The position numbers were made by a program, and so were the translations under genes. Shown here in pieces: positions 2,290 through 53,548 of a DNA stretch of 64,000 nt. The DNA is taken from the sequence record NC_047995.1. The stretch is one strand, 5' to 3'. Position 1 is the stretch's first letter. The number at the start of each line of letters is the position of its first letter. The notes below the pieces were generated by a model, which was given only the letters and a program-made list of their open reading frames with translations, was not told the DNA's origin and did not search any database.

Positions 2290-3279
2290 ATGTCCAAATC
2301 AACTCCTCAAATCTTCCTTGACCTGTTTCTCAAGGACGTCAGAATCTTTCTGCCTAAGTTCGACAAAGGACTTGAGGCGTATTTTCAGAAGTGCAAAGGC
2401 AAGCCTGGTATGTCTGGTGTGTCGCTTCATCAATACATGAAGTGGCTCAACCCACTAGCCAAGTGCCCAGCAGGCCCGAGTGAAATCTCCATCATAACGT
2501 CAGGCTATCTGCATTACTTCTGGCAGTTCTCAAAGCCGAACTTTGTCTTTGACCCTACGATTGTGAGTCACTTGGTTGATTCAGTATTGCCTGACGAATT
2601 ACCTGCCGAAGTGCTGCATCGACTGCCTTACTGGAGTCAGTGGATAACGATGCCTGTCAGTCTGCAAAGCAAAGACAACAGTATGCAACTGGACTTCGAT
2701 GGTGCGTTCGTAGGTTACACGAACATCAACGGCCGACCAGCACTGGCACTCGCAGCACCTTTTGTTTCTGATGACCCAAGCATACGCTCGAACGACTTCA
2801 CACCGTTCGTCACCTCATACGTTTATCTGGACCAGCCTGTTAGGACTGAGTTGCTTGTCACGAACAGTCACCTGCTCAACGTGTCGGACGAGGTGAGTCG
2901 CGATCAATTTGCATCACTGATAATCAACGTCCATCACTACCTGACGAAGATTGTTTGCTGTGTGCTGTACATCTGCTCCGAGCAACAGGCGCTGCATACA
3001 GAAGGGCACTCGCAGCCTAGACCTCAACGCTTAGGCAAAAGCTATCGCATCACTCCGCCGAAGGATGATCGTGTGATCACGCTAGGCACGGAGATGGCGC
3101 AACTACTTAAAGACTTCGAGGCAGAAGTCGAAACGTGTACTCGCGCTTTCAATGGACGCAGACCGCATCTGAGGAGAGCGCACTACCATCACTTCTGGAC
3201 AGGACCTAAAGTAGGCGAACAGGTTCTGATCTGCAAGTGGTTGCCACCGAGAGTTGTTAGAGGAACCATCCCGCAATAA
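2290..3279 (+). CDS. Hypothetical protein with C-terminal HxRRxHxHxxWxG motif
   Basis: AGGAG SD before ATG 2290; C-terminus RRPHLRRAHYHHFWTGPK...WLPPRVV. Confidence 0.8.
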   Translation: MSKSTPQIFLDLFLKDVRIFLPKFDKGLEAYFQKCKGKPGMSGVSLHQYMKWLNPLAKCPAGPSEISIITSGYLHYFWQFSKPNFVFDPTIVSHLVDSVLPDELPAEVLHRLPYWSQWITMPVSLQSKDNSMQLDFDGAFVGYTNINGRPALALAAPFVSDDPSIRSNDFTPFVTSYVYLDQPVRTELLVTNSHLLNVSDEVSRDQFASLIINVHHYLTKIVCCVLYICSEQQALHTEGHSQPRPQRLGKSYRITPPKDDRVITLGTEMAQLLKDFEAEVETCTRAFNGRRPHLRRAHYHHFWTGPKVGEQVLICKWLPPRVVRGTIPQ

Positions 3280-3325
3280 CTCGTTATCAATACTCCACGT
3301 ATGGGCGTTAGGCCCGGAGGCTATT

Positions 3326-4093
3326 ATGAAATCTCGTGTACAACATGCGTATATTCCTGATATGGAATCGTTTGACCCTTACGTCCGTTCTCTGTGCCAT
3401 ATGGCGCGAGCATTGGACACCTCAAATTCTAACTATGGTAAGTTGAAACGTGTCGTGATCATCGGTACGTCGAAGCGTGTGGTTGAAGCCTACGTTAAGC
3501 AGTTACTAAATGCGAACAATCTACCTCACACTCTCGTCTGCTTTGGTGTAGACGAACCTCCTATCAGCCACAGAGATTATTCCTACGCAGGTGCCCACGT
3601 TGTGCTTATGCACGATCTGACTTATGTTGATAGCAGCACTATGGGAAAAGTTGCTACGCGTGTCCTAGAAATCATCGACAGCCTAAAACAGAAAGAAGGC
3701 GATACTGAACTCAAAAACAGTGAGTTGTCTTTGGTATATTCGAATCCGCACCTGTGGAACTCTATCCTTGACTACGGCGCCGCGACGAGCCTGAAAATTA
3801 CTGGCAATAACATCGAATACCGTAGCGGCTTGGTTTCATCTGTAGGTCTTGATGCGTTGATGAAAAGCGAAAGCAATCAGCAGTACCACGAGCTTCGTGC
3901 AGAGACGATTACAATTGGCCTGGAGTTCTTCTGCGTACACACTGACTACCTGCTATCCAAAGTACATAACCTGTTGTGGTCGCTTGCGTGTGATGACTGC
4001 CAGTTCAAAAAGAGTCATCGCATCATCTTCCATGAAGACTTCCGTCGCTTGTTCTTTGAAGAATACATCCTCAGGGACTTCAAGGGCTTTTAA
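3326..4093 (+). CDS. Hypothetical alpha/beta protein, distant paralogue of 1464..2186
   Basis: GGAGG SD before ATG 3326; similarity to the 1464 protein. Confidence 0.75.
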   Translation: MKSRVQHAYIPDMESFDPYVRSLCHMARALDTSNSNYGKLKRVVIIGTSKRVVEAYVKQLLNANNLPHTLVCFGVDEPPISHRDYSYAGAHVVLMHDLTYVDSSTMGKVATRVLEIIDSLKQKEGDTELKNSELSLVYSNPHLWNSILDYGAATSLKITGNNIEYRSGLVSSVGLDALMKSESNQQYHELRAETITIGLEFFCVHTDYLLSKVHNLLWSLACDDCQFKKSHRIIFHEDFRRLFFEEYILRDFKGF

Positions 4094-4168
4094 GAATATT
4101 CTTAGCCTGCTCTCTAATTTCAATATGTTGGCAAGTAGTGCTGACGTATCGTTATTGGAGAAATAACA

Positions 4169-4429
4169 ATGTGCGAACGTAGCCATCTGCGGTTGAAGTA
4201 CCTCGCACGGTCATCTGGCTGGTGCAATAATAAAGTAAACGCTTGTAGTGAGCGGAAGGCGACAAACGTACAGTGCGAACAATTTTTGGAAGCAACCAAG
4301 AATTGCCGCAGCGAACAGAAGTCGTCCAGTGTAGTTTCTTTCTTCAAAGGTCATGAGCTTGTTGGTCAGGCTATATGGCATGAGATTGAAGGAGACAGCA
4401 CACTTCAATTCCGGTTGCTACTTGCTTAA
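4169..4429 (+). CDS. Small Cys-containing hypothetical protein
   Basis: GGAG SD 8 nt upstream; stop codon directly before a terminator. Confidence 0.5.
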   Translation: MCERSHLRLKYLARSSGWCNNKVNACSERKATNVQCEQFLEATKNCRSEQKSSSVVSFFKGHELVGQAIWHEIEGDSTLQFRLLLA

Positions 4430-4433
4430 TGAC

Positions 4434-4476
4434 AGAGGGCCTTTCAGATTAACATCTGGTGGGCCCTTTCTTCTTT
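4434..4476 (+). terminator. Rho-independent terminator
   Basis: agggcc...cagat-taac-atctg...ggccct followed by ttcttcttt. Confidence 0.7.
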
Positions 4477-4528
4477 ATATGCTAATTTTTATCGTCATTA
4501 ACACACAATCCTACTTCGGGGTAACACT

Positions 4529-6628
4529 ATGTCTTTGATTAATCCCAAAGGCGTCCAGTCATTGTCTGCGCCTACAAAAGCCCAGAAGGACGCCGCTGTT
4601 TATATGTTTGGCTCTAAGGGCCACTCCATCGTTGCCGTACTCGACAAGTTCAGCCGTGCAAAAGAAGTTCGCACCGCACACATCGACGGTCTGCTCAAGC
4701 TGATGAAAGAAGGTGACGATGAAGAAATCATCAAGTTCACTGCCTCGGCTGCTGGTAAGAAGTCTCTGGCTGCTGCGAAACAATTCGCTGTCGCTAAAAC
4801 TTTGGCTGCAAGCATCAAAGCACTGAAACTGGTTCGCGTTCCTTTGAAGTGGATCGCAGGTCACTCCGATGCGGCTGCTGCGCGTATCACCGAGACCAAA
4901 GAAATCCGTGCTCGTAAGACTGCTGGCAACAAGCCTGAGAAGCCTATCAAGCTCGATAATCCACATGCACCAGAAGCTGTGGACATGAGTCCTGCCGCTC
5001 TGTACGATGCCGCACACCGCGCGAAAAATACTGCACCGTTCGAAGCTGTACACAAAGCGGTGGCCGCTTCTCTGAAACAGTTTGGCCTGAAAACTGAACT
5101 GGCGATGAACAAGATCGGTGATACCTTGATTCTCGTTAAAGCTGGCAAGAGTGTTGAAGGTCGTATCTCATTCCCTTCCAGCAAACGTAAACTTGGTTGG
5201 GACAATGATGATCCGAACGCGTTCTTCCTAGGTGCGCAAAACGCCGAAGAACGTGACCTGGTCATGGACTACGTGACGACTACCTTCAAAAATGCACCAG
5301 CTACAGTTGCTAAGGCGTATGAGAAGCTGTGGGAAAAAGCTGCGGCCGGTGAGTTCGGTGATATCCCTGTACGCCGAGTGCCTGGTGCAAAAAAGCCTAA
5401 ACCTGCTGGGGCAAAACCTGTGCCAGAAGCCAAGCCCGCGGCTAAGTACACGCCGTCAGGTAAATCTGACGTGACGCTGGTGGACGAACTGGCAGAAGTC
5501 ACCGCACGTAAGATCTCTGCAAAGCCGATGCAGGCGCGTGAAGAATATTTCAATGCGCTGCGTAACGTATTGCAGAAAAATCTGCCGAAGACCGTCGTCG
5601 CTGTTGTATCGAATGGCGTTACTGTTGTAGGCAAACGCGATTACGTTATCAACCTTAACGACAACGCGTGGACGATCAAAACTGGCGTAACAGGTAAACC
5701 GAAACGTATCGGCGCAACGTTTGATATCGTTGACCTGTTGGGTATGCTGGACAAGAGCATTCTGCGCCCAAAGCCTGATGCGGCTAAGCCTGCTCCTGCA
5801 GCAGCGCCCGCAGCCGCAAAACCAGTTAAGCCTGCTCCAGCCAAGCCAGCGCCAGTGAAGAAGACTGAGGCACAAGCGTGGTCTGATCGCGGCCTGTCGT
5901 CTAAGATTGCTCGTTTGATTCCGAATCAGGCGCGCAAGCGAGACTCTTTCTATCTGGCTTTGTCTAACATTGCGTACTCTCTGCCAAACTTCGATATGTC
6001 ACGCGTCAATATCTATGACCCGGGCGAAATGCTTTCTATCACTACACAGTTCGGTGACTGGCGATTGATACGCGGCGAAGATGGCTGGCCGGAGTTGCAA
6101 CTGTCTGGGCGTCATGAATCTCCAACCGTGGCATTCACTACGTGGGACCTTGCCAAGACTCGATACGTCAATATGTTTGAGGCAATCGAAGACGGCACCT
6201 ACGCCACGAAGGAGAGACTGGTGAACAGGCTTGAAGGTATGGTTACCTCGCAGACTCATTATCCTAATGCGAAGCGACCGTACCGTGTGAACTACGATCC
6301 TGCCGACCAGAACAATTACGACTTCACGCTGATCAACATGACGCCTGAAGGTCTTCGTAAGGCCGACTTCAAGACAGTTCGTGATTTTGCCTATAACTAT
6401 ATTCAACACACCATTCAATATAGAATCGGCCACGAGAACTGGATTGAGTTCGACGACACTGGCGGTAAGCCTACGTGGAAGATTGAGTACGAAGGTAAGA
6501 AGTTCTTGCTCGAAGCTCATGGCTCCAAAGCGTGGGAACTGGTTCGCACCGACAACGGAACGAATGCACCTATCGACTTAGGCGCAACCATCGATCCGTA
6601 CAAGGTATCTAAACTGGTTATGCAGTAA
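4529..6628 (+). CDS. Large basic modular protein with Lys/Pro/Ala linkers (possibly virion- or DNA-associated)
   Basis: 699 aa; KPAAAPAAAKP-type linkers; repeated W-x(n)-(I/L)GAT(F/I)D segments; highly expressed codon bias. Confidence 0.85.
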   Translation: MSLINPKGVQSLSAPTKAQKDAAVYMFGSKGHSIVAVLDKFSRAKEVRTAHIDGLLKLMKEGDDEEIIKFTASAAGKKSLAAAKQFAVAKTLAASIKALKLVRVPLKWIAGHSDAAAARITETKEIRARKTAGNKPEKPIKLDNPHAPEAVDMSPAALYDAAHRAKNTAPFEAVHKAVAASLKQFGLKTELAMNKIGDTLILVKAGKSVEGRISFPSSKRKLGWDNDDPNAFFLGAQNAEERDLVMDYVTTTFKNAPATVAKAYEKLWEKAAAGEFGDIPVRRVPGAKKPKPAGAKPVPEAKPAAKYTPSGKSDVTLVDELAEVTARKISAKPMQAREEYFNALRNVLQKNLPKTVVAVVSNGVTVVGKRDYVINLNDNAWTIKTGVTGKPKRIGATFDIVDLLGMLDKSILRPKPDAAKPAPAAAPAAAKPVKPAPAKPAPVKKTEAQAWSDRGLSSKIARLIPNQARKRDSFYLALSNIAYSLPNFDMSRVNIYDPGEMLSITTQFGDWRLIRGEDGWPELQLSGRHESPTVAFTTWDLAKTRYVNMFEAIEDGTYATKERLVNRLEGMVTSQTHYPNAKRPYRVNYDPADQNNYDFTLINMTPEGLRKADFKTVRDFAYNYIQHTIQYRIGHENWIEFDDTGGKPTWKIEYEGKKFLLEAHGSKAWELVRTDNGTNAPIDLGATIDPYKVSKLVMQ

Positions 6629-12484: not shown

Positions 12485-12529
12485 ATATGTGAGCGCTATG
12501 CTCATACAACCAACGCTGAGGAGCGTATC

Positions 12530-37603: not shown

Positions 37604-39220
37604 ATGTCATTCGATCTTCGTCAAAACTTACTGCTTGTTCGTGACGCTTCCCTGACAGGCAAACCGCTGTTCTACTTCTACACTGCAATGGGCCGCGTCA
37701 TGGTCCTGACTGGTGACGTGCTGCGTGAAATCCTTGAGCGTCAGAAAGAGGGTACACTCTGCACCAACACTTACTGGGGATTCGTATCAGACCCTACGTT
37801 GGAAGTTTGGTCGTTCGATGATAACAATGACCTAATGCTTCACCACCGCATCGGCAAGTCCTGCAAAACGTTTCTGCCTTACGAAATGATTGCGAGTGCG
37901 CATGACGGGTTCAAGCCAATCAATGGCATGTTCATTGAAGACAGCTTGCACCGCATCATCAAGATTCATCTCAAGGCAACTTGTCGTGAAGAACAAAAGA
38001 TTACGTGGTTCGCCGATCTGCCTGAGCCTGAGATGCGTAGCATGTTGTTGTCACTGGGTCTGGGCCCGCTGCGCGTAGAGCGTGAAGACAAAGAGGGTCT
38101 GGTCAAGCTGCATGATCAGTGGCTGGAAGACTTCGATGACAAATACAAATACACGCATAACACACTCGGCCTCGATGAAGACGAAAAGATTCCTGCTGAT
38201 TATCGCCCTGAACGTATTCGTGACATTACGAAACGTATGATGGCTGGCACCAAGACACAAGAGATGATGGACCAGACTCTGAGTGACTTGCTGGGCCAGT
38301 GTCGTATCAGAGGCGATGTGCCTATGCCTAACAGCAAGTTCAATCGCAGTCAGTTGACCTGCTACTACGCAACGCATTTGATCTTTGCGCATGACGCAGA
38401 CGAAAAGCTGCGTAGCTTGATTGATAATCCGCAGTTCCTCGTTAACTTCATCTACGGCTGGTACCCTGATTATACGTGGATTACGATCAACGAAGAAACG
38501 TTCGACTATCAACAGTCACTGGTACGCGCTGCGCTGATCTCCCTCAAGAGCCATGTGCAGAATGAAATCGGTACGTACAAACTTGTACACGGCATGGTTA
38601 CGTTCACTGAGGACTTTGATCCACACGCGAAAGACAGGCCAGAAGAAGTAGAGGACGAGGAAGAGTACGACGAGGAAGAAGATGACGACGCAGAGCAGGA
38701 CGTTATCGACTACCTGCGCACTCGTAGTGAAGACGAACTACGCGCCGTTGCAATCAAGAGAAAAATGATTACCTCGCGTAAAGCAAAAACGCTGGACAAG
38801 GAAGAGCTTGTCGAAGTGTGCGCTGACTACTACGGCTCGGAGCTGCCTGAAGACTTCGACGAAGCAGAAGAAAAGGAACAGGAGCGCGTTCCTACGCCTC
38901 GTAAATTCCCTGCGCTGTCTAACGCGTCCAGTATTAAATACGATATCATCCGCAGCATTCTGAGCACTGCGCGTCGGTATAAGACGCAACCTGTACGCAT
39001 TAAGAAGACTGATCGTAATGCCCGCAAAGAGGCAGAAGTCAACGAGCGTAAGAGAGTGATCGACACTCTCCGCGATGCTGTCAACGATAACTGGTTGGAG
39101 TCTCTGCCTGCAAATACGTTAACGGCGCTTGCGTACTCTCTTACTAAGATGAAAGACAATGATCGCTACCCACGTGACTGTGCTTTCCTGAAAGAACTAA
39201 TTAAACACGCGGTCAAGTGA
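37604..39220 (+). CDS. Multidomain protein with two HeH-like modules and an acidic tract
   Basis: Modules at 38009-38122 and 38714-38830; EEVEDEEEYDEEEDDD tract. Confidence 0.8.
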   Translation: MSFDLRQNLLLVRDASLTGKPLFYFYTAMGRVMVLTGDVLREILERQKEGTLCTNTYWGFVSDPTLEVWSFDDNNDLMLHHRIGKSCKTFLPYEMIASAHDGFKPINGMFIEDSLHRIIKIHLKATCREEQKITWFADLPEPEMRSMLLSLGLGPLRVEREDKEGLVKLHDQWLEDFDDKYKYTHNTLGLDEDEKIPADYRPERIRDITKRMMAGTKTQEMMDQTLSDLLGQCRIRGDVPMPNSKFNRSQLTCYYATHLIFAHDADEKLRSLIDNPQFLVNFIYGWYPDYTWITINEETFDYQQSLVRAALISLKSHVQNEIGTYKLVHGMVTFTEDFDPHAKDRPEEVEDEEEYDEEEDDDAEQDVIDYLRTRSEDELRAVAIKRKMITSRKAKTLDKEELVEVCADYYGSELPEDFDEAEEKEQERVPTPRKFPALSNASSIKYDIIRSILSTARRYKTQPVRIKKTDRNARKEAEVNERKRVIDTLRDAVNDNWLESLPANTLTALAYSLTKMKDNDRYPRDCAFLKELIKHAVK

Positions 39221-40557: not shown

Positions 40558-41223
40558 ATGAAACCAGATTACACTCTGCTCAAACGTAGCAAGGTTGATG
40601 TTAACCGCTTCGCTTTCGTGTACGACGGCGACCTGCTTGCCAACTTTACCGCCTCCCAGTTGTATCGGACGCTGGAGAAACTCAATAGCCCGAACGTGAT
40701 TAAAGATGTTGATGTGCTCTGGCGTGACGGTACGCGCACCGTTGAAGAATTGCGTGTGACCGAGCATCGCCACTTTGTTCGTTTCGATACGTGCGAATAT
40801 GACCACGCTATCTGCCTGATGATGCGAGCACAAGGTCTGCCTATTGAACTGTCTGTCCCTGTAGACGTGCGTAGGCTATTCGACGCGCATGGATCACTTA
40901 TCTCTGAGATTCGTGTACCGTCTGAATTTGTCGCAGACCTCAAGCCTGCTCTTGAGCGCTTCATTCCTGGCGACGAAGATGACTGGGACGAAGATGCGGA
41001 TGATGACTTCGACGATGAAGATGAAAGCGACTTCGACGAGGAGGAGTTTGGATTCCGTCCAGAAGACTTGCGTCCGCAACTAAGCGACTTCGGATATCGT
41101 GCGGCCGACTGGGTTGTCACTCTGACTGATGAACAAATCAGCGAAGTACACACTCTTGAAGTGGGTATTGACCCAGACATTGAACTGCCTCGTGCGGCTG
41201 ATGCGAAGGAAGAATTTTTCTAA
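40558..41223 (+). CDS. Hypothetical protein with acidic C-terminal region
   Basis: AAGG SD; DEDDWDEDADDDFDDEDE tract. Confidence 0.8.
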   Translation: MKPDYTLLKRSKVDVNRFAFVYDGDLLANFTASQLYRTLEKLNSPNVIKDVDVLWRDGTRTVEELRVTEHRHFVRFDTCEYDHAICLMMRAQGLPIELSVPVDVRRLFDAHGSLISEIRVPSEFVADLKPALERFIPGDEDDWDEDADDDFDDEDESDFDEEEFGFRPEDLRPQLSDFGYRAADWVVTLTDEQISEVHTLEVGIDPDIELPRAADAKEEFF

Positions 41224-41557: not shown

Positions 41558-41929
41558 ATGAAGTTTAACGATGTATCTCACAAAGCGCAGGTGGTTCTCA
41601 TGGCGAGTGCGTTTGGCGGTGTGATGGAAGTTCTGTCCCGTAGCATGGACGATGAAGGTCGCAAGTTCCTGGAAGTTGCGCTACGCCGTGTCGGTCTGAC
41701 AGTTGAGGAGTTCCAAGCTCTTATCAACGATCTCGACGAACCTACAGGTAAAGAAATCATTGCTGTTATGGAAACAGCGCAAGCCGAAGAGTCTGCGTGT
41801 GAGGCAGAAGACGAAGACGAAGAAGAATCTGCTGACGACGACTCTGATACGGACGCTGACGGTTGGCAAGATCTGCAAGAAGATCGCATCTGTCTCGTAT
41901 GCAACCACGAATACTGCGTCTGTCACTAG
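41558..41929 (+). CDS. Helical protein with acidic tail and terminal Cys/His knuckle; paralogue of 13429..13701
   Basis: GGAGG SD; alignment to the 13429 protein; C-terminus CLVCNHEYCVCH. Confidence 0.8.
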   Translation: MKFNDVSHKAQVVLMASAFGGVMEVLSRSMDDEGRKFLEVALRRVGLTVEEFQALINDLDEPTGKEIIAVMETAQAEESACEAEDEDEEESADDDSDTDADGWQDLQEDRICLVCNHEYCVCH

Positions 41930-42186: not shown

Positions 42187-42915
42187 ATGCCTACTACTTC
42201 ACGTCCTAAGACAGAAGACAAGTTCTCCCGTGTTCGTGCCTCTAAGAACTCTCCTGAGCGTCAGGCAGCGGTCGCTAAGAAAACTCCACGAGGCCCGAAA
42301 GGTTCCACGAACACCGGAGGCTTCAAAAGGGATGAAGTTGTGATGTTAATCAGCTCGCCAAAGATTCGTGATGAAGAACGTGTGTACAATCTCGTACATG
42401 CAATTCTGAGCGCGTGGAAAGCAGATGTTGGTCATGCCGAACATACAGCTGCCTCTGCCGGCATCATCAAAGTGTCACGTCGTAAGATTGAAGGCGCCCT
42501 GCGTGACCTCAAGAATACGCGCTTCACTAAAATCCCGACACTCATTAATGATATCCTGACAGGCTCTGATATCTGCGCTGAGTTTGGAATGTGGGTGTAT
42601 GTCGAGCACGACAGTCCTGATTGGATTTTCGTCCGTCTGCCTGATGACAGTACACCTGTGATTCGTGCTGATATCAGTTGTGACAAGACAGGCGAAACGT
42701 CTGCGTCTATCACAACGTCCAGTGAAGCTCTGCTGGAAACGTTCAGCGAAAGCGATGATGAGATCGAGATACTTGAATGTAACGATCAAGATATCGAAGA
42801 CCTCGAAACGAAGGCGATGCGCAAACAGCTAATCGACAAGGGCATCATTAAGCCCGAAGCTGCCGACAAGCTGCATCGCCCTGACTTGATGAAGCTGTTA
42901 GCGTACTACGCATAA
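42187..42915 (+). CDS. Protein with basic N-terminus and C-terminal HeH-like module
   Basis: Module IEDLETKAMRKQLIDKGII...DKLHRPDLMKLL at 42793-42909. Confidence 0.8.
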   Translation: MPTTSRPKTEDKFSRVRASKNSPERQAAVAKKTPRGPKGSTNTGGFKRDEVVMLISSPKIRDEERVYNLVHAILSAWKADVGHAEHTAASAGIIKVSRRKIEGALRDLKNTRFTKIPTLINDILTGSDICAEFGMWVYVEHDSPDWIFVRLPDDSTPVIRADISCDKTGETSASITTSSEALLETFSESDDEIEILECNDQDIEDLETKAMRKQLIDKGIIKPEAADKLHRPDLMKLLAYYA

Positions 42916-42971: not shown

Positions 42972-43017
42972 CTGGACAAAATCGTGGTTGTTATCTGACG
43001 GCCACCAATGCTATACT
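42972..43017 (+). promoter_or_regulatory. Phage promoter class A
   Basis: CTGGACAAAAT, then TGC-TATACT at +40. Confidence 0.8.
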
Positions 43018-43073
43018 TAATGCAGACGCAATAGTGCGTCGCAAACAAAACCCAATACTGAGGAGTATTAATC

Positions 43074-44651
43074 ATGGCACGTATCGAAACTAACACTAAC
43101 CTGGTTGGCAAAACTATCGTCCTGCTGAACGGCACCAAAGCTAAAATCGAAGATGCGATTGCATCAGGTTATAAAGTGAAAGGCCAGAGCAAGCGTATCG
43201 CCACTCGTTGTGTTGTGAAAGAAGGCGCTCACTTCCGCGAAATCGAACGCATGAACATGAGCCTGCTGGAAGACACTGGCGAAGGCTATGTAAAGTTGAA
43301 AGACGCGAAAGCTGCGAAAGCAAAACCGGCCGCCGATAAGAAACCAGCAGGCAAGAAAGACCCGAAAGCTACTGGCAAGAAACCTGCCAAGCCTGCGAAA
43401 GAAAAAGAACCTAAGGTTCGTCGCAAAACCTCCGAAGAGAAATCCGACGAGTATCAAGATCTGGCACACGCTATCATCAAAGGTGGCAAGCGCGCCAAGC
43501 CAGTAGAAATCGCTGAGATCGACGCTGACCTGACTGACACCGTAGCGCAACGTCTGGTAGACGTGCTGAACAACTCTGAGATCGCCAAGCTGTGCGCTGA
43601 CAACAAAACGCCGATTGCGAACGCTCTGGAAGTTGCATACGGCGCCGAGTTCGCTCCTGAAACAAACGTCATGCAGATCACGCTGAGCCTGCAATACGCG
43701 AAGCCTGTTGCCGTGCTGTCTCGTCCGACTCTGGAAAACGCCGAAGCCATTGCGTTACGTGCTCAAAAAATGGCGGCGCCTAAGCTGTCCATGAAGCTCA
43801 AGAAAGCGATTCGTGAAGCGTTCAACCTCGAAGACGCCAACGAGCTGGAGCTGGGCACCGTGCTTATCTCTGGCGACGAAGAATTTGTGTTCTTCGGTGA
43901 GTCTGCCAAGCACGTCGGCAAAGCGCTGCTGTATGTCGTAGCGACCGACAAATTCAAATCTGTGCTGGGCTCAACTCTGGGTGATTATGAAATCCCAGAA
44001 CTTGAGGAAGAAGAAGAAGACGCCGCCGAAGAGGAAGAAGAAGAAGAGGAAGAAGACGGCGAAGAAGAGGACGGTGAAGAAGAGGACGGCGAAGAAGAAG
44101 ATACCGCCGAATACGAATACGTTGCCGTGAACAAAGACCAGCTCGATATGGTCAATAAGAAAGTGACCGCTAAGTATCACGCTGCGTTGGCTGAACGCTT
44201 CAATACAACCGAAGAAGTTCTGATCCCGGGTCTGGTGCTGACCGATGGTGAAACGACCTTCGCTTACCTGGGCTGTGATAGCAAAGGCGGTCTGCTGGTC
44301 ATCGACTGCGGTGACGACGGCGAAGGCGAAGACGTGATGCTGTATAGCAAAGCTGATATCAAAGAGCTGGAAGACTTCAATCCTGTGCTGGGCGCTGCTG
44401 GTTCTGATGCCGATGAAGAAGACGGCGACGACGATGCGGAAGAAGACGGCGACGATGAAGAAGATGGCGATGACGAAGACGAAGACGGTGAAGATGACGA
44501 CTTCGACTTTGACGATGTACCAGAAACTGATATCGAAGATCTGACCGACGACGAACTGCGTGACCGTGTAGTTGAAGCAGGCCTGACCACTGTACGCAAA
44601 GCCGATCAGATGGACGCCGCTAAACTGCGCAAGCTGCTGAAAAGCGCATAA
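43074..44651 (+). CDS. Large modular acidic protein (basic N-domain, two repeated domains, D/E tracts, C-terminal HeH-like module)
   Basis: GAGGAG SD; strong codon bias; module at 44532-44648; paralogous domains shared with 44734. Confidence 0.9.
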   Translation: MARIETNTNLVGKTIVLLNGTKAKIEDAIASGYKVKGQSKRIATRCVVKEGAHFREIERMNMSLLEDTGEGYVKLKDAKAAKAKPAADKKPAGKKDPKATGKKPAKPAKEKEPKVRRKTSEEKSDEYQDLAHAIIKGGKRAKPVEIAEIDADLTDTVAQRLVDVLNNSEIAKLCADNKTPIANALEVAYGAEFAPETNVMQITLSLQYAKPVAVLSRPTLENAEAIALRAQKMAAPKLSMKLKKAIREAFNLEDANELELGTVLISGDEEFVFFGESAKHVGKALLYVVATDKFKSVLGSTLGDYEIPELEEEEEDAAEEEEEEEEEDGEEEDGEEEDGEEEDTAEYEYVAVNKDQLDMVNKKVTAKYHAALAERFNTTEEVLIPGLVLTDGETTFAYLGCDSKGGLLVIDCGDDGEGEDVMLYSKADIKELEDFNPVLGAAGSDADEEDGDDDAEEDGDDEEDGDDEDEDGEDDDFDFDDVPETDIEDLTDDELRDRVVEAGLTTVRKADQMDAAKLRKLLKSA

Positions 44652-44733
44652 CGAACTACCGTAACAACTGAACAAGATGCGGCTCTCACCGGGCCGCATA
44701 TCTGACAAATAAAGCTGATTGAGGAATCACACT

Positions 44734-45990
44734 ATGTCAAACGCAAACAAAATTCTGCTTAACGCTCGTGTACGCCGCTTAGATGGTACCATCACTTACA
44801 TCAATAAAATAAACGCTAACGGTTATAGCACCGATGCGAAAGGCCCGCAGATTCCTGTGAAGCGTATTGTGTTCGCAGGCAAATCTCTGAAAGAAATCGA
44901 ACAGCCGTTCGAAAAAGGCGAGTTCGTGATTGTGCAGGGCGTTGCTGTTAAGCTAAACAAACGCCAGCAACGTGAACTGGCTGAGGGCACCCTCGACGAG
45001 AAAGCGCTGCGTCCTGAGTTCGGCCGTCTGGCGTTCATCGACCGCGACGACGGTAAAGCAACTGACGGCAAGAAAGTGAAGCCGAAAGCCGTGAAGAAAG
45101 ACTCTGGCCTGAAAGCTACTCGTAAGCAGAACGGTGACACGCGCACCAAGAAAGAACGCAAGGCAGAAGCTGCCGCTGCCGATGATTCGCTCGACATGAT
45201 CAAGTCCACGCCGATTGATCGTAAAGCTGAACTGGCTAACGTCATCGACGCGACAATCGAAGACGCGACGACCAAAGAGCGCCGCAAGCTGCTGTCTGAA
45301 TCGTTCGACATGGACTGGAAAGACGTGAAGAAGCATGGCGGTAAAGGTGTCGTCAAACACATGGGCCGTAAAGCTGCGCAAGCTGCTGTGAACAAACTGT
45401 CTGCGACTGTGACGCAAGACGCATTCATCAAACAGATGCCTGCTGCGTTGAAGCGCCTCATTCAGGACGGCACGTTGACGCTCAACAAGGCCCAGATTGA
45501 ACGTGTGTTGAGTGCGCTCGACCTCGACGTTCGATTCTACAGCATTGCAATGCAGACGCTGCTGGGTAACCTCAAGCTGTCTCTCGAACGTGCTGCTGAT
45601 GAACCGAAAGCGGTCAAGAAAGTGAAGAAGCAAAAAGTACGTCAGGGCAAACCGACGTATGCGTCTGAGAAAGACCAGAAGCGCCGCATCAAGAAAATGA
45701 GTTGCGCTCTGCTGGCACCTTCGAAGAAAGATTTGAAGGAACTGAAAAGTAAAATCAAAGCGGCGAAAGCAACGATTGCCAAGAAGCTCGGACTCAAGGA
45801 CGATGAAGTGAAGCGCGGCCTGATCGTGTACCGTCCTAACGGTGTTGAGTTGATGTTCGTAGCGTGTGACCTGGTCGGGCCTGTGTTCATCGAGAAAGAC
45901 GGTGACCGTGTGCAGTTCAACTATGCGCACGTCGGCAGCACCTTCGACCTGCGTCTGACTGAACCTTCTGAACTGGATGCTACTGTATGA
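44734..45990 (+). CDS. Large Lys-rich protein, basic paralogue of 43074..44651
   Basis: GAGGA SD before ATG 44734; shares the N-terminal domain and a repeat domain with the upstream gene. Confidence 0.85.
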   Translation: MSNANKILLNARVRRLDGTITYINKINANGYSTDAKGPQIPVKRIVFAGKSLKEIEQPFEKGEFVIVQGVAVKLNKRQQRELAEGTLDEKALRPEFGRLAFIDRDDGKATDGKKVKPKAVKKDSGLKATRKQNGDTRTKKERKAEAAAADDSLDMIKSTPIDRKAELANVIDATIEDATTKERRKLLSESFDMDWKDVKKHGGKGVVKHMGRKAAQAAVNKLSATVTQDAFIKQMPAALKRLIQDGTLTLNKAQIERVLSALDLDVRFYSIAMQTLLGNLKLSLERAADEPKAVKKVKKQKVRQGKPTYASEKDQKRRIKKMSCALLAPSKKDLKELKSKIKAAKATIAKKLGLKDDEVKRGLIVYRPNGVELMFVACDLVGPVFIEKDGDRVQFNYAHVGSTFDLRLTEPSELDATV

Positions 45991-46370
45991 CGAACAATGA
46001 GATCATCCTGACTGGTGTTTTCGCTCAACTGTACGCGCGGCTAGTGATGGCCGCTGTACAGCGCGTCCATGTGTACTACTCTGATCTCGCTCCTGTTGTG
46101 TTTGGTGTTCAGTTCACGCGTGTGGGAAAGGCGCAGTACAAGGCACTCGAATCGCTCATTGCCCAGACGATGCGCCTTGATATTGAAAACGGCAGGCCAC
46201 CGCTCGCGGCCTTATATGTGTCACGCGCAAACGACTCTAAGAAACCCACCCAGTCATTCTTCAATGAGTACACGAAGCTGACTGGGACCCATCTTACTGA
46301 CGGTGATTGGCAGACGCTCGTTGAACATGTGTGGAAACAGTATGCACCAGACTTTCGGGAGCCATCATGA
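45987..46370 (+). CDS. Putative winged-helix DNA-binding protein
   Basis: YYSDLA...L..L....D...GRPPLAALYVS...P...FF pattern typical of small wHTH proteins. Confidence 0.45.
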   Translation: MTNNEIILTGVFAQLYARLVMAAVQRVHVYYSDLAPVVFGVQFTRVGKAQYKALESLIAQTMRLDIENGRPPLAALYVSRANDSKKPTQSFFNEYTKLTGTHLTDGDWQTLVEHVWKQYAPDFREPS

Positions 46371-46828
46371 AAAAGTCAAAAGTTGTAATTAGCCGCGGAG
46401 GGTATCGTCCGTCCTCGCATGAAGAAGCACAAAAGCTGGTTGCTGAGTTTATTCTCGGCACCATCGGAGTTGACCCTACTGTTATCAGCCAGCAGATGCT
46501 GTTGAACATTGCGAACTACAATTACCTGACCTCTATTGCAGACACGGGTAAGGCAAACGTAGCGAACCAGAACGCTCTGCATAAAACTGTAAAAGAACTT
46601 AATGCGTTCTGTCGAATGCACAAGATCTCGTTGGGCTTGCTAATTATGCCCCATACATCGGCTAGTGATTATTCCGGTGACGAGGTTGTAGCGATTCCAT
46701 GGGAACATGTGCGCAAGAACCCATTAAGCCAGTCTGCTATCAACTCCCTGTTCCAAACAGTCGAAGCTGATGGCTATCCGCAGTTTGTGACTGATGCGAA
46801 AACAGTAGAGGGATACAATGTTTTATGA
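46367..46828 (+). CDS. Hypothetical protein
   Basis: GGGAG SD; ATGA overlap. Confidence 0.7.
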   Translation: MKKSKVVISRGGYRPSSHEEAQKLVAEFILGTIGVDPTVISQQMLLNIANYNYLTSIADTGKANVANQNALHKTVKELNAFCRMHKISLGLLIMPHTSASDYSGDEVVAIPWEHVRKNPLSQSAINSLFQTVEADGYPQFVTDAKTVEGYNVL

Positions 46829-48098
46829 TCACGTATTCAACCACGACGAGAAGCAATTGCTCCTGTCAGTGGCTGAGTCTAAATATCTGGTGCGTCTTGA
46901 TTGCCCCGACTATTTGAAGAAGTCAAAACACTCGATTGAAATTCGTCACACGGTAACCAATCGCGGCGAGCAACGTCGAAGCGGTGTTGTGAATACAACG
47001 TTCGTTCCGCGTATTCATACCTCAACTGTGCAGCGTCTGGTTCGTGAAATCCGCGACTCGGCGGGTGTAGCTGCTTCCACAAGTTTGGCCGCGTTGTTTG
47101 AACTCGGGCTCGGTGTGCCGAAGCAACGTGATATTGCAACGTACCTGCGTGACTACTCGCGTGAGAACGATAAGAAGGGTGTGGGCATCAAGTATATCCG
47201 CAAACTGATTAACGAGTATCATCGCAAGCACCGTCACAGTTTCGCTGGTAGTCGCTGGCTGATGCCTGCTGTCTACACGGCGAACATGCTGAACATGCAG
47301 TCCTTCATTCATCTGAAAGAAGACGGCTACAGCAAGAAGGTCAAAGTGCCTGACGGTCTGCCTGTCGTTCTGATCTACCAGAACACCAACCATGCGAAAG
47401 CAGAGTTCACCTTGTGTGACGCATTCATGATAAGCCCGCTAGGTTATCCGATGCCGTTCGCGCAGATTGCATTACGTCCTGAGTTCAAAGGCGCGCCGAA
47501 AGTATTCCATTCGAAAGCGCTGCGTGGTCAGGGTATGTATAGCATGGTGATGGGCATCATGCACTGGGAGAAAGGCGATGCGCTCTCTCACTTCCGTGAG
47601 TTGACTGCGATTGACGACGACCCGTACCTGACGTTGTTGAGTAACCCGCAGTATGCTGATCGTCGTTCGCCTGAATATCAAGCGTTGCTGGACAAACGTG
47701 CTGAGTATGCGGAACAGCGTCAGGAGCATAACGAAGTGATTGCTAAGTATGGCAACACTACGCGGGCCCTCAAGCCTTCTCAAGTGGAGCGCTTGGAGAA
47801 AGCTGAGGAGTTCTTCAAAGAACGCAAATCGTTTATGGACGACTTTGATAAGTTCGAGAAGAAAGAGAACCACCACGCGGCTAAGAAGTTCTCTGTAGCC
47901 AGTGCGCAGTTCGCGGCCGTTGATTGTGGAACCATCGCTGACCGTTCAACGTATATGTCTGTTGCGTCCGGCCTCGACAAGGTAAACAAGATTCTCACTA
48001 AGTGGGGATTTACCACAGTCGATACTGTTAATAGTAGTTTGAAGAAGTCTATCCTTACATTCGACCCAACAAACGCAACACGCGTATGGTCACTGTAA
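46818..48098 (+). CDS. Hypothetical basic protein with coiled-coil segment
   Basis: GAGGG SD; 426 aa. Confidence 0.8.
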   Translation: MFYDHVFNHDEKQLLLSVAESKYLVRLDCPDYLKKSKHSIEIRHTVTNRGEQRRSGVVNTTFVPRIHTSTVQRLVREIRDSAGVAASTSLAALFELGLGVPKQRDIATYLRDYSRENDKKGVGIKYIRKLINEYHRKHRHSFAGSRWLMPAVYTANMLNMQSFIHLKEDGYSKKVKVPDGLPVVLIYQNTNHAKAEFTLCDAFMISPLGYPMPFAQIALRPEFKGAPKVFHSKALRGQGMYSMVMGIMHWEKGDALSHFRELTAIDDDPYLTLLSNPQYADRRSPEYQALLDKRAEYAEQRQEHNEVIAKYGNTTRALKPSQVERLEKAEEFFKERKSFMDDFDKFEKKENHHAAKKFSVASAQFAAVDCGTIADRSTYMSVASGLDKVNKILTKWGFTTVDTVNSSLKKSILTFDPTNATRVWSL

Positions 48099-48124
48099 AC
48101 ACCGTATCTGAGGAGATAACGCAA

Positions 48125-51082
48125 ATGTCTAACAACAATAATCTGGGCGCTGCCGCAACATTCGGTGCTGAAACGCAGAAGATGTTGACCGATCAGCAAC
48201 GTCGTTCGCAGTCTGCCGAAAGCGGCCACGTAAACAAATGCACCATCGTTGTGCTGACCTCGCTGAACGCACACAATCGTTTCTCGTATCTGTCCGCTGA
48301 CGAGCAATTGATTGAACGTCCGATCGAAGGCAAAGTGATGGACCGTTTGCCGAAGCTGATTGAACGCGCCTCTGGTGCTTCCACTGATCCGAACAGCGCG
48401 TATCACATTCTGCATCCAAACAACGGCGTGCCTACTCGTATCGACGAGCGCATCAAAGTAGGCGAAGGTGATTCGGTCATCGTTTCATATACTGTAAACA
48501 AAGCAGTGTCAGAGATGTATGGCAGTTTATCGCTCGCTCTGTTTAGTGCTGGTGATGGTGATCTCGCTGACCTGGCGGCTGAGTTTGGTATTCACTCCAT
48601 CTCAATCGTTGAAGAAGCGAAAGCTCCTGATTACATCAAAGCCCTCACCGATCAGGTGGAAGCTCTGAATATTGTAAATCTCACTAGCATTGATGAAGCT
48701 GACGGCGCATTCGAAAAACCTGTCATCGACTACAGCGCTCTGCCTGGCAATCCAACTAACGTGTTGTCTGGCGCTGTTCGTACTTTCATTATGCAAACTA
48801 TCAGCGGCGAAGTCTTCGCTGCAATTCCAAATAACGGAGAACTGAACGTGAAACCAACTAACACCCCGACCCCTGTTACTCTGGACGAAGACTTCGACGC
48901 CGAAGACGAAGTGCTTGATCAGAACGGCGGCGAAGGCGAAGACGACGAAGAAGCGACAGGCACCGACCTGTTCGGCTATAAAGCCGAAGCGCTCACCGTC
49001 GAGCAAATGACAGAAGCGCTCGAAGCTCTGTCCTACGATGTTAGCGCGATGGACGAAGACGGCATCCGCGAATCGTTTGAAACTGAACAGCAGATCTGGC
49101 TGGCCAACAACGACAACGCCGAAGATGGCGAAGAAGAGGACGAAGAAGAAGACGGCGAGTTCGACGCTGCTCTGTATCTTGGCCACCTGCTGGCTGCCGA
49201 CGAACTTGATCGTACGGCTCTGAAAGTTCTGGTGCGTACTCAAGACCTCAAAGTGATGAAGTCTGATACCGAAGAAACGCTGACTGCGAAACTGCTGGAA
49301 CTGGTTGAAGGTGCGACCGAGCAGGAAATGGCTGAACTGATCAACACCTTCGTAGGCGCGCTGCAAGAGCGTGAGATCGATTGTCCTAACCTGCTGGCTG
49401 CTCTGTCGTCTGATGGAGACGAAGAAGAACAGGACGACGAAGAAGAAGAAGAAGATGAAGACGATTCTGAGGAAGAAGAATCCGAAGATGAAGACGAATC
49501 TGATGCCGACGAAACGCAAGCGCAGATCGACGCCGTTACCGATCCTCTGGACTACTTCCAGTTCGCTGGTGGTTCTCTGACTGCTGAACAACGTGCTGCT
49601 GCCGTTGAAGCGATGGGCGAAGATGTTACTGGCCTGAACATCGTGCAGGTAATGAAAGCGTTCTCTCGCATTCAGAGCCAGACCTCTGAGTTCGATGCCG
49701 AAGCGCAGGACGAAGCTGAGTCCGAAGGCAATACCGAAGAGCTGGTCGCGCTGCTGTCTCAGTACGATGACGCTACCGTGCAGCACATCGCAGAAAGCCT
49801 GGGCGTTAACGTTGACGAATGCGAAACCGCAGACGAAATGATCGACGCGATTGTTAACGGCGGCACCGAAGATCAGTTCGCTGCTGTTGAAGAAATCGCA
49901 ACCAACTACGGTGTTGACCTGTCCGAAGTTGCTGACGGTGATGATCTGGACTTCGTTGATGCGCTGCTGGCTGTACTGCCTGCGTTCCTGAACGACGACG
50001 AAGTTGCCGAGCAGGACGAAGACGAAGAAGACGCGGAAGAAGCTGACGAAGCCGAAGCTGACGTTGCTACTGAAAACGATAGCCTGCGTTTCGTTAAAAA
50101 CGTTGACACCAAAAACTCTGTCGGCCCGATGCTGTCTGTCGAAATGGATCAGGCACTGGTAATCAACTTCACTCTGACTGACGGCGATACCTACCGCGAC
50201 GTTGAATCTGAGCTGGCTGATGTTAACGGCTTTAACTACCGCTTCCCGTTCAATCTGGGCCGCGCGGACAAAGCACCTGGTGCTATGCTCCTGCCAGTGC
50301 AGTCTCTGATGGAAATCGTTGAGCGCGTGAACACCACTCGCTTCCTCGCAGATCCTAAAACGTTCAACGTGGCCGCGTGGGCAGAAAGCCTTGAAGCTAC
50401 TCTGAGCGAAGAAATCGCAAGCGCTCTGTATGCAGGTCGTATCGAAGACGGTCTGGACCCGAGCGAAGCAGGTATCGTTGTTGGTGACTTCATCGACGAC
50501 GAAGAACTGGAAGAAGCGCAAGCGCTGGGCCACATCGACCCTGAGCAATTCGCTGAACTGTCTGGTGATCATCTGCCGATTGCAAGCCTGTACAACGCTC
50601 GCTCTCGCGTTCGTCCTGTGCAAGTTGATACCGCACACGTTGCGCTGCACACCACCGTAATGAACATCGCTGTCCCAGGCTTCTGGGGTGATGCACCTGT
50701 TCAGCGTATGGTGCAGGCCGCAGTCAACCGCGTTATCGCTCTGTCTGAAACTGTCGAAGGCGTTAAGGTATACGCTGCGTTCACGATGGAATCTGCGGCA
50801 TTGCTGAACAATGATCGTCTGTTCGAAGCACTGTCCACTCTGCGTGAAATCGAAGGCGCCCAGTCCTACTCTGCTGTAGACGCTGCGAACTTCGATGAAG
50901 CCGAAGACGTGATTGAAGTTGCAAGCGCTCTCGATACGCGTGACCTGCCGCTGTCTATCCTGTCTGGTGGTCTGGCTGCCGCAACGTTCGACAACGGTGG
51001 TGACCTGACTGTCCTGGTGCCGTGCTTCTCTACCGAAGAAGAAGATGAATCGGAAGATGAAGACGAAGGCGACGACGAATAA
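48125..51082 (+). CDS. Very large, highly acidic protein with about four Rho-N/HeH-like modules between D/E linkers
   Basis: GAGGAG SD before ATG 48125; modules such as LTVEQMTEALEAL..MDEDGIRE and YDDATVQHIAESLGV..ETADEMIDAI. Confidence 0.9.
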   Translation: MSNNNNLGAAATFGAETQKMLTDQQRRSQSAESGHVNKCTIVVLTSLNAHNRFSYLSADEQLIERPIEGKVMDRLPKLIERASGASTDPNSAYHILHPNNGVPTRIDERIKVGEGDSVIVSYTVNKAVSEMYGSLSLALFSAGDGDLADLAAEFGIHSISIVEEAKAPDYIKALTDQVEALNIVNLTSIDEADGAFEKPVIDYSALPGNPTNVLSGAVRTFIMQTISGEVFAAIPNNGELNVKPTNTPTPVTLDEDFDAEDEVLDQNGGEGEDDEEATGTDLFGYKAEALTVEQMTEALEALSYDVSAMDEDGIRESFETEQQIWLANNDNAEDGEEEDEEEDGEFDAALYLGHLLAADELDRTALKVLVRTQDLKVMKSDTEETLTAKLLELVEGATEQEMAELINTFVGALQEREIDCPNLLAALSSDGDEEEQDDEEEEEDEDDSEEEESEDEDESDADETQAQIDAVTDPLDYFQFAGGSLTAEQRAAAVEAMGEDVTGLNIVQVMKAFSRIQSQTSEFDAEAQDEAESEGNTEELVALLSQYDDATVQHIAESLGVNVDECETADEMIDAIVNGGTEDQFAAVEEIATNYGVDLSEVADGDDLDFVDALLAVLPAFLNDDEVAEQDEDEEDAEEADEAEADVATENDSLRFVKNVDTKNSVGPMLSVEMDQALVINFTLTDGDTYRDVESELADVNGFNYRFPFNLGRADKAPGAMLLPVQSLMEIVERVNTTRFLADPKTFNVAAWAESLEATLSEEIASALYAGRIEDGLDPSEAGIVVGDFIDDEELEEAQALGHIDPEQFAELSGDHLPIASLYNARSRVRPVQVDTAHVALHTTVMNIAVPGFWGDAPVQRMVQAAVNRVIALSETVEGVKVYAAFTMESAALLNNDRLFEALSTLREIEGAQSYSAVDAANFDEAEDVIEVASALDTRDLPLSILSGGLAAATFDNGGDLTVLVPCFSTEEEDESEDEDEGDDE

Positions 51083-52744: not shown

Positions 52745-53548
52745 ATGGCAAAAGCTAAAGCAACCGCAAATACCGCAGCAATCGTTCTGGCCAAAATGCT
52801 GGGCGTCGTAGTCGAAAACGCCAGCGCCGCTGATATCGCAGCGATTCTGAAAGAAGCCGGTCTGACTGTTGTTGGCGGTAAAGTTGTTAAAGCTGAAAAA
52901 GGCGGTAAAGCTGCTAAAGGCAAAAAGGCCAAAGCACCTACCGTTGCTGAAATCGTCGCTGCTGTTAAGGACGAAGAAGAACTGGACATCTCCGGCGTTG
53001 ACGAAGACACCCTGCGCGAAGCAGTAGTCAAAGCCAAGCTGTCTACTGCCAAGAAGGCTAAAGCGCTGGACGAAGACGACCTGCGCGAACTGCTGGAAGA
53101 AAAACTGGGTGGCGAGTCCGACGAGGACGACGAAGAAGAGGACGAGGACGAGGAAGACGACTCGGACGACGAAGATGAAGACGGCGACGACGAAGACGAA
53201 GACGACGACTCGGATGATGAAGACGAAGACGACGACTCGGATGATGAAGACGAGGACGACGAAGACGACGAAGACGGCGACGATGAAGAAGAAGAGGACG
53301 ATGAAGACGAAGATGAGGACGAAGATGATGAAGATGATCTCGACCTCGACTCTCTCGACAAGAAAGAGCTGTTAGCCCTGGTCCTCGAACACAAGCTGGC
53401 TCCGGCCAAGAAGGCTAAGAAAATGGACGAAGATGAACTGCGCGAACTCTGCGAAGAACACTTCGGCGGTGAAGACGACGAAGACGAAGATGAAGACGAA
53501 GACGACGAAGACTTCGACGATGAAGACGAAGACGAAGACGACGAATAA
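52745..53548 (+). CDS. Extremely acidic protein with two HeH-like modules and long D/E tracts
   Basis: Modules at 52988-53104 and 53345-53461; near-pure D/E tracts between and after them. Confidence 0.9.
   Translation: MAKAKATANTAAIVLAKMLGVVVENASAADIAAILKEAGLTVVGGKVVKAEKGGKAAKGKKAKAPTVAEIVAAVKDEEELDISGVDEDTLREAVVKAKLSTAKKAKALDEDDLRELLEEKLGGESDEDDEEEDEDEEDDSDDEDEDGDDEDEDDDSDDEDEDDDSDDEDEDDEDDEDGDDEEEEDDEDEDEDEDDEDDLDLDSLDKKELLALVLEHKLAPAKKAKKMDEDELRELCEEHFGGEDDEDEDEDEDDEDFDDEDEDEDDE
53201..53254 (+). repeat. 27-nt tandem repeat encoding DDDSDDEDE x2
   Basis: gacgacgactcggatgatgaagacga(a/g) twice. Confidence 0.85.

Follow-up and report, generated by a model that had tools for sequence, protein, structure and literature searches.

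The last 64 kb (right end) of the genome of the Erwinia phage vB_EamM_Alexandra (MH248138, 266,532 bp, genus Alexandravirus), a jumbo myovirus of the PaBG/Lu11-related "Lupandier" group (PMC7412058), carries two adjacent genes, Alexandra_329 and Alexandra_330 (329 and 330 from here on), which encode related proteins of opposite charge. This 64 kb stretch, which is 100% identical to the Alexandra record, is referred to as the window and supplies all coordinates given below; the two genes and the features mapped in and around them lie on its plus strand. Gene 329 (43074..44651) encodes an acidic protein of 525 residues with a net charge of -65 and an isoelectric point (pI) of 4.35 (51 Lys, 17 Arg, 58 Asp and 75 Glu). 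The protein encoded by 330 (44734..45990) is basic, comprises 418 residues and has a net charge of +31 and a pI of 9.87 (60 Lys, 27 Arg, 32 Asp and 24 Glu).

Both genes and all of their neighbours are annotated as encoding hypothetical proteins. The start codons (ATG) and ribosome-binding sites (RBS) of 329 and 330 are conserved in related phages, and each protein matches over nearly its whole length the hidden Markov model (HMM) of one PHROG family, phrog_33433 for 329 (E 1.2e-188, residues 1-522) and phrog_32501 for 330 (E 3.5e-145, residues 1-418), the function of neither family being annotated. Scans against Pfam, NCBIfam and PHROG returned no family of known function for 329, 330, their separate domains or nine neighbouring proteins. 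Literature on the genus, on related phages and on the concept itself yielded neither functional or transcriptomic results on these genes nor virion proteomics that cover them, and no publication on the two proteins, their paralogy or the block of charge-conserved genes to which they belong. The proteins are already public as hypothetical proteins. For the majority of jumbo-phage genes no function is known, and the domains of the superfamily that includes 329 and 330 are now defined.

An earlier note on this DNA had placed the two genes at 43074 and 44734 and had described them as adjacent paralogues with opposite charges, sharing an N-terminal domain, a Lys-rich linker and a second domain that occurs twice in the first protein and once in the other. 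The coordinates are correct and the motifs quoted in support lie where they were said to lie. What became of the description itself, and of the proposal that duplication was followed by divergence into a DNA binder and a polyanionic partner, is related in the sections that follow.

Shared Domains and Common Descent

The N-terminal domains (N-domains) of 329 and 330 are already recognizable as similar by pairwise BLASTP (28% identity over 53 residues, E 0.002), and the comparison gains greatly in significance when family alignments, built from 24 and 22 homologues, are used. Aligned with hhalign over the full proteins, the two families pair at their N-termini with 82% probability (E 1e-5), and sub-alignments restricted to the N-domains reach 95% (E 2.6e-8), against at most 1% for seven unrelated domain pairs run as controls. 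An N-domain HMM of either family, searched against all 752 six-frame open reading frames (ORFs) of the window, finds the other gene as its sole non-self match (E ~2e-5), the next ORF having an E value above 0.2. The N-domains of both families align without gaps over ~58 columns, of which eight are invariant (L10, G20, T21, I25, G32, Y33, G51, and E56), and distant relatives bridge the two genes in that they match both 329 and 330 by plain BLASTP.

A second shared unit, here called the R domain, is present as two copies in 329, R1 (residues 232-305) and R2 (residues 346-437), which match each other by hhalign with 95% probability (E 2.9e-8). The C-terminus of 330 (residues 325-418) matches R2 with 82% probability (E 1.1e-5) and R1 with just 28%. 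The HMM of the 330 family also matches the R2 region in several homologues of 329, and the reverse search gives a corresponding result; in the AlphaFold models R1, R2 and the 330 C-terminus have the same predicted secondary structure, consisting of a helix, four strands and a short helix. The middle regions of the two proteins are unrelated (hhalign 0.1%), that of 329 being predicted as alpha/beta and that of 330 as all-helical.

Structural comparison leads back to the same set of proteins. A Foldseek search of BFVD with the 329 model recovered a Yoloswag protein of 359 residues (E 4.4e-10) and a basic protein of 308 residues from the Dickeya phage JA13 (E 2.1e-5), and no matches outside the superfamily. 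The length of 359 residues is also that of the 330-family homologue P0072, the N-terminus of which is nearly identical to the Yoloswag ORF.

Chance similarity between 329 and 330 was rejected on the basis of the control comparisons. It is well supported that the two are true, ancient tandem paralogues with a collinear order of N-domain, basic linker, middle region and R domain, and on these profile comparisons two previously separate PHROG families (33433 and 32501) are joined in one superfamily. The claims of the earlier note on shared domains are borne out here: the shared N-terminal domain by the HMM-HMM alignment (95%, E 2.6e-8) together with the reciprocal HMM matches, the second domain, twice in the gene at 43074 and once in that at 44734, by hhalign probabilities of 95 and 82%, and the Lys-rich linker after the N-domain by its occurrence in both proteins. 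The domain homology that the note depended on is significant when set against controls of at most 1%.

Conservation of Charge and Gene Order

Homologous pairs were found at 17 related loci, comprising Alexandra-, Y3-, AD1- and Yoloswag-type Erwinia/Dickeya phages and the Yersinia phage fHe-Yen9-02. At all 17 the acidic gene lies upstream of the basic one, at a distance of 68-88 bp, and the polarity of charge is the same throughout, the net charges of pairs read at full length ranging from -53 to -83 for the first protein and from +23 to +34 for the second. The opposite charge of the adjacent paralogues (-65 and +31 in Alexandra), as reported in the earlier note, is therefore a property of the whole set of loci.

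The conservation extends to more distant phages and to the genes downstream. In JA13, which belongs to the genus Salmondvirus, the pair has charges of -60 and +29 and the whole block of genes is present in the same order, with net charges of -60, +29, -2, -2, +17, -177, -4, and +13, as compared with -65, +31, +1, 0, +14, -182, -10, and +14 for Alexandra 329 to 336. The block proteins of the two phages share 27-50% identity for the seven genes with a BLAST match, the remaining pair, JA13_312 and Alexandra_335, having none. That block charges are kept across genera at this level of identity argues for selection on charge itself. The most acidic members besides 329 are 334 (48086-51082), with a net charge of -182 over 998 residues, and 337 (52745-53548), with -97 over 267 residues; further acidic neighbours are 325 (40558-41223; -31), 327 (41558-41929; -24), and 321 (37604-39220; -23), and basic neighbours are 333 and 336 (+14 each). 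In JA13 each of these charges keeps its sign and magnitude.

Genes 329 and 330 open a conserved, tightly packed, non-structural gene block (329 to ~336) of the PaBG-related ("Lupandier") jumbo phages. The recognizable genes of the window encode a radical SAM enzyme, a UvdE endonuclease and GyrB-like and ParC/GyrA-like topoisomerase subunits; no structural genes were recognized among the neighbours in the window, of which UvdE and the GyrB-like and ParC-like subunits belong to DNA metabolism, and the surroundings are taken as non-structural.

Distribution and Evolution of the N-Domain

When the N-domain profile was searched against 1.84 billion representative proteins, 31 matched at E <=0.001. 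Four of the 31 were left out, two that were fetched being unrelated repetitive proteins and two that were not fetched having the same short, repeated pattern of matches. In the remaining proteins the domain lies at the very N-terminus. Their charge is bimodal, with pI values of either 4.05-4.5 or 9.6-10.4 and one neutral protein, and all of them, acidic ones included, carry a net positive charge in the first 150 residues. In view of this positive beginning in every member, a bipolar acidic form could be ancestral and 330 derived.

A maximum-likelihood tree of the N-domain separates a basic from an acidic clade (support 85/84). Mapped on this tree, the charge label changes twice, a number as low as this being reached in none of 500 shuffles. 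Acidic and basic members thus make up two clades of old standing, and opposite charge is supported as an old and stable trait of the family. Duplication followed by divergence in charge, as had been proposed, agrees with the homologous N- and R domains and with the two clades of the tree.

A metagenomic contig (L019) departs from this pattern in an informative manner. At positions 2808-5398 it encodes adjacent acidic (-48) and basic (+18) proteins followed by a homologue of gene 331, and the N-domains of these neighbours group together (96/97 support) and are far more alike than those of Alexandra, while the basic protein keeps a C-terminus of the 330 type. The grouping indicates that the N-domain is exchangeable between the two proteins, by gene conversion or recombination in this contig; homogenization of the domain between neighbours suggests in turn that it does the same job in both.

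One homologue of 330 (P0055) is encoded on a contig of 266,333 bp deposited under Salmonella enterica serovar Infantis, and is probably derived from a group member that the Salmonella isolate carried or that was assembled together with it.

Domain Organization of 329

The N-domain of 329 (residues 1-62) and the beta-hairpin that follows it, with an invariant DTGEGYV and extending to residue 78, occupy 43074..43307. The N-domain is predicted to form a five-stranded small beta-barrel plus the hairpin, as is that of 330. It is followed by a linker rich in Lys, Ala, and Pro (residues 79-117; 43308..43424), predicted to be disordered and with a net charge of +12 over 39 residues, and by a middle alpha/beta domain (residues 118-235; 43425..43778) with a predicted local distance difference test score (pLDDT) of 72-87 and no counterpart in 330. 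The second half of the protein is an alternation of R domains and acidic tracts: R1, delimited by hhalign, HMM and AlphaFold (residues 236-305; 43779..43988), acidic tract 1 (residues 306-345; 43989..44108), R2, which is the most conserved R copy (residues 346-437; 44109..44384), and acidic tract 2 (residues 438-483; 44385..44522), which ends in an invariant aromatic-acidic DDDFDFDD. The net charges of these segments run from +4 (N-domain), +12 (linker), -5 (middle domain), and -2 (R1) to -30 (tract 1), -12 (R2), -29 (tract 2), and -3 (C-terminal end). The mean pLDDT is 67 for the 329 model and 73 for that of 330, with 70-90 in the folded parts; the Lys-rich linkers and Asp/Glu tracts of the two proteins are predicted to be disordered (pLDDT 30-46, acidic tracts 30-37).

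In the DNA the acidic tracts correspond to imperfect tandem repeats of 15 and 21 nt (the 15-nt type in tract 1), and tract length varies among orthologues, which fits growth by slippage. A gain of Asp/Glu tracts in the gene at 43074, as claimed in the earlier note, is to this extent plausible.

The C-terminal module of 329 (residues 484-525; 44523..44648) resembles helix-extended-helix (HeH) motifs. Helices are predicted at residues 492-501, 507-511, and 515-524 (pLDDT ~80), and the spacing pattern is L..ELR....GL....K...M....L..LL. With the SAP/LEM/HeH motifs, among them the N-terminal domain of Rho, it has in common a length of ~40 residues, the spacing, recurrence in the region and possibly the pair of helices; it differs from them in remaining below threshold in Pfam and in being unmatched among sequences of solved structures. 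Three of 11 modules reach 14.8 bits with Pfam LEM, below the cut-off of 24 bits, one of 11 reaches E 0.0016 with SAP, also sub-threshold, and a profile of the module searched against PDB sequences matched no SAP, LEM or Rho-N domain. The HeH module announced for 329 thus stands as a predicted helical element with HeH-like spacing, whereas its assignment to LEM or SAP is sub-threshold, and it is the weakest part of the original observation. Similar modules recur at the end of 328 (42784-42903), twice in 337 (52970-53098 and 53324-53449) and in 321 (38681-38815), with HMM E values of 3e-4 to 3e-7 for 328 and 337 and of 9e-3 for 321, so that the module looks like a shuffled element of this genome region.

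Domain Organization of 330 and Fold Comparisons

The 330 protein begins with the N-domain homologous to that of 329 (residues 1-60; 44734..44913). A stretch resembling ribosomal protein uL24 (residues 55-118; 44896..45087) overlaps a first Lys-rich linker, partly disordered (residues 101-160; 45034..45213), and is followed by an all-helical middle domain in the AlphaFold model (residues 161-285; 45214..45588), which has at most a faint match to DUF5770. A second Lys-rich linker (residues 286-330; 45589..45723; net charge +11) leads to the C-terminal R-type domain (residues 331-418; 45724..45987), which has a conserved ELDxxV tip. Every segment is mildly to strongly positive, in agreement with the earlier description of this protein as Lys-rich throughout. 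Some orthologues (L013:5986-7410, L014:5986-7410, and also P0061, P0064, and P0066) are ~55 residues longer, with a doubled helical middle segment (family HMM positions 166-226).

Foldseek searches of the PDB with both AlphaFold models returned nothing at E <=0.001. The best matches (E >=0.09) were SH3-like barrels, namely KOW, Tudor, PWWP, CPH, PRC and the L2 SH3 domain, and on these models the folds would be generic small beta-barrels. The five-stranded small barrel predicted for the N-domain is what the two proteins have in common with the KOW/SH3-like barrels of uL24, NusG/Spt5 KOW, Tudor, PWWP and PRC. Searched against the PDB as a sequence profile, 329 gave no match, while the 330-family profile matched uL24 of several organisms, at a borderline best E of 7.6e-4 and, for another five uL24 chains, at E 0.0065-0.065; the E. 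coli protein was absent from these matches. The alignment is collinear and the family consensus includes an IDPETGKAT-type stretch. Against this, the separate fragments and 22 family members had no match to Pfam KOW or ribosomal_L24 at E up to 1, and uL24 differs in size, 329 and 330 being four to five times longer. The resemblance is a lead only.

Transcription and Translation Signals

A promoter scan located a candidate sigma-70-like promoter (42973..43017) in the 158-bp spacer before 329, composed of the upstream motif TGGACAAAAT, a -35-like GTTGTT and a TG-extended -10 element, TATACT. Across 12 related phages no change occurs in the upstream motif, in GTTG or in the TAnnnT of the -10. Promoter-like motifs of the same layout (TGGACAAAAT, 4 nt, (G/C)TTG, ~17 nt and a TATAcT-like -10) occur at 18134, 26966, 41942, and 42973, that is, four copies as compared with 0.5 expected; all are intergenic and each is followed within ~10 nt by a hairpin.

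Downstream of the -10 the leader of 329 contains a hairpin of the form GACGC-loop-GCGTC (43025..43040), for which RNAalifold on 12 phages gives four core pairs, two of them compensatory and none broken. Another hairpin lies between the two genes (44677..44699), with five of nine pairs compensatory in 10 phages and no T-run. Given the lack of a T-run, the leader and intercistronic hairpins are probably elements of RNA stability or processing rather than terminators. Each of the two genes is moreover preceded by a hairpin with a 5-bp stem that displays its Shine-Dalgarno sequence, GAGG, in the tetraloop: that of 329 (43055..43068) ends 5 nt before the ATG and is invariant in 12 phages, and that of 330 lies at 44716..44729. 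JA13 keeps an RBS hairpin at the same place before its acidic gene, with a 7-bp stem of different sequence.

From 330 to 334 every annotated coding region overlaps the next one (45987-48098), by an ATGA at 330/331 and at 331/332, by 11 nt at 332/333 and, with the annotated start of 334, by 13 nt at 333/334. Such overlaps point to translational coupling within one operon, and genes 329 to 334 would, on these signals, form a single operon read by the host polymerase.

Possible Functions of the Pair

While duplication and divergence in charge are well supported, a mechanism that combines a DNA binder with a polyanionic partner is plausible, from composition only. It is tentatively proposed, as a possible rather than a probable reading, that 329 and 330 are a nucleic-acid-associated pair in which 329, by means of its polyanionic tracts, tunes or chaperones binding. 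The two proteins would be made from one sigma-70-like promoter, with each RBS displayed in a hairpin loop. The basic linkers and barrel domains of 330 would mediate its binding to nucleic acid, DNA being the most likely target, and 329 would bind by its HeH-like module and the basic half at its N-terminus. In competition with nucleic acid, the polyanionic tracts of 329 would occupy the basic segments of either protein, and this competition would tune, chaperone or release binding, in the manner of HMGB1, T7 gp2.5, and prothymosin-alpha/histone H1. The shared N-domain would recruit 329 and 330 to a common partner, or each to the other. Since 329 keeps the basic linker and the HeH-like module, it is not simply a polyanion and may bind nucleic acid itself.

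The proposal draws on known systems. DNA binding by H1-like proteins relies on tails rich in Lys, Ala, and Pro, and acidic tails act on basic DNA-binding segments as auto-inhibitors or chaperones. Histone H1 with prothymosin-alpha or nucleoplasmin offers a Lys/Ala/Pro-rich disordered basic protein with a long poly-Glu/Asp partner, and the interaction expected there, electrostatic competition with DNA, is the one proposed here; it differs in that 329 and 330 bear no sequence or fold relation to it and have no winged-helix globular domain, and in that they are paralogues, side by side in a phage. HMGB1, T7 gp2.5, T4 gp32 and bacterial SSB resemble 329 in its bipolar arrangement, with a basic N-terminal and an acidic C-terminal half, and the invariant DDDFDFDD recalls acidic tips of the SSB type; the tracts of 329 are, by comparison, far longer and are followed by the HeH-like module, and no OB fold or HMG box was detected in either protein by Pfam, PDB or Foldseek searches. 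The building blocks are therefore ordinary ones (a small barrel, Lys-rich and Asp/Glu-rich disordered segments and a HeH-like motif), and the likely mode of action has known analogues.

Several observations weigh against the proposed pair. No domain of 329 or 330 scores above any Pfam, NCBIfam, or PDB threshold, and homology provided no evidence of nucleic-acid binding by either protein or of an interaction between them. The charges are not balanced one to one (-65 and +31), and those of orthologues have no obvious co-variation; extreme acidity is common in the block (334 and 337), so that 329 may owe its acidity to a role in which 330 has no part. The pairing itself is not universal, as two short contigs, L021, which carries the phage NCTB protein, and L022, encode an acidic protein with no adjoining basic partner bearing an N-domain in the available sequence, and JA13_307 has no R domain. 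The timing of expression, finally, is deduced from the promoter-like motif only.

Some of these points would be accommodated if the two proteins were independent adaptors, docked by the shared N-domain on one target (for example the RNA polymerase, ribosome or nucleoid of the host, or another phage protein), with the rest of each protein having a separate job and the opposite charges being unconnected with each other. The lack of balance between the charges agrees with this explanation, as do the conservation of the N-domain, higher than that of any other part in either family, its invariable place at the extreme N-terminus, its swap between neighbours in L019, the borderline uL24-like stretch in 330 and the weak fold matches, which are to barrels that dock on proteins or nucleic acids (KOW, Tudor, and PWWP). 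All of those fold matches are, however, non-significant, and the strict adjacency, the probable shared transcript and the opposite polarity conserved across genera suggest a linked function; on balance, independent docking seems doubtful.

A more ambitious form of the proposed nucleic-acid-associated pair, regarded as unlikely, is a polyelectrolyte "chromatin" kit, in which the H1-like basic protein, its acidic paralogue and other charged or HeH-bearing proteins of the block would form a complex or condensate on DNA and thereby organize or shield the phage genome or strip the host nucleoid early; the kit would be a phage analogue of linker histone and disordered chaperone that arose from one duplicated gene.

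Electrostatics might instead operate without a dedicated pair, the disordered segments of 329, 330, 334, 337, 333, and 336 forming a coacervate-like body that organizes phage replication or transcription. Such a body would be compatible with the length and disorder of the polyanionic and polycationic segments, with the extreme charges conserved throughout the block and with the HeH-like modules in four proteins of the region, but composition is its sole basis and negative charge is in vast excess in the block as a whole, which makes it quite improbable. To our knowledge, no nucleus-like compartment is known in these phages.

It is very improbable that the two are packaged internal or ejected proteins, with the N-domain as a head-targeting signal for acidic and basic cargo. 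Phage T4 offers a precedent for this idea, having both basic internal proteins and acidic core proteins, and both there (where the internal proteins have a capsid-targeting sequence) and here different, highly charged proteins share one N-terminal module; in T4, however, the module is a 10-residue peptide and not a folded domain of ~60 residues, and 329 and 330 lie in a non-structural context, among genes of DNA metabolism, behind a sigma-70-like promoter and not in a recognized head module. Their homologues are hypothetical in all records, and a virion proteome for this genus was not found in the literature.

Very acidic early phage proteins are often nucleic-acid decoys, such as the Ocr-type mimics, and several acidic proteins cluster in the block, but a role of the 329 tracts as an anti-defence or host-takeover decoy that soaks up host nucleoid proteins or restriction and defence nucleases, with 330 functionally unrelated, is very unlikely because known mimics are compact and folded and none was found to match 329 in sequence or fold. 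A folded DNA mimic of the Ocr/ArdA type was rejected on the same grounds: in place of a compact Asp/Glu array there are tracts predicted to be disordered.

If 329 and 330 indeed act on DNA or on one another, as in the pair proposed here, they would provide a simple bacterial-virus model of disordered polyelectrolyte complexes of the H1/prothymosin type, as well as a first point of entry into the functions of the early region in PaBG-related jumbo phages. Some phages of this group are under development as fire-blight biocontrol agents.

Implications for Annotation

Should the proposed mechanism prove wrong, the analysis would still give a cleaner annotation, with the limits of the domains, a class of promoter and ribosome-binding sites displayed in hairpins. 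Neighbours 333 and 334 had no match in the PDB. Perfect 5-bp hairpins with GAGG as the tetraloop occur on the plus strand of the window at 12513, 13030, 40071, 41544, 43055, 44716, and 48105, each 0-6 nt before an ATG; these seven compare with 0.25 expected from shuffles and with none on the minus strand. The hairpin at 48105 suggests that 334 starts at 48125 and not at the annotated 48086, and the PHROG match of the annotated protein begins only at residue 15.

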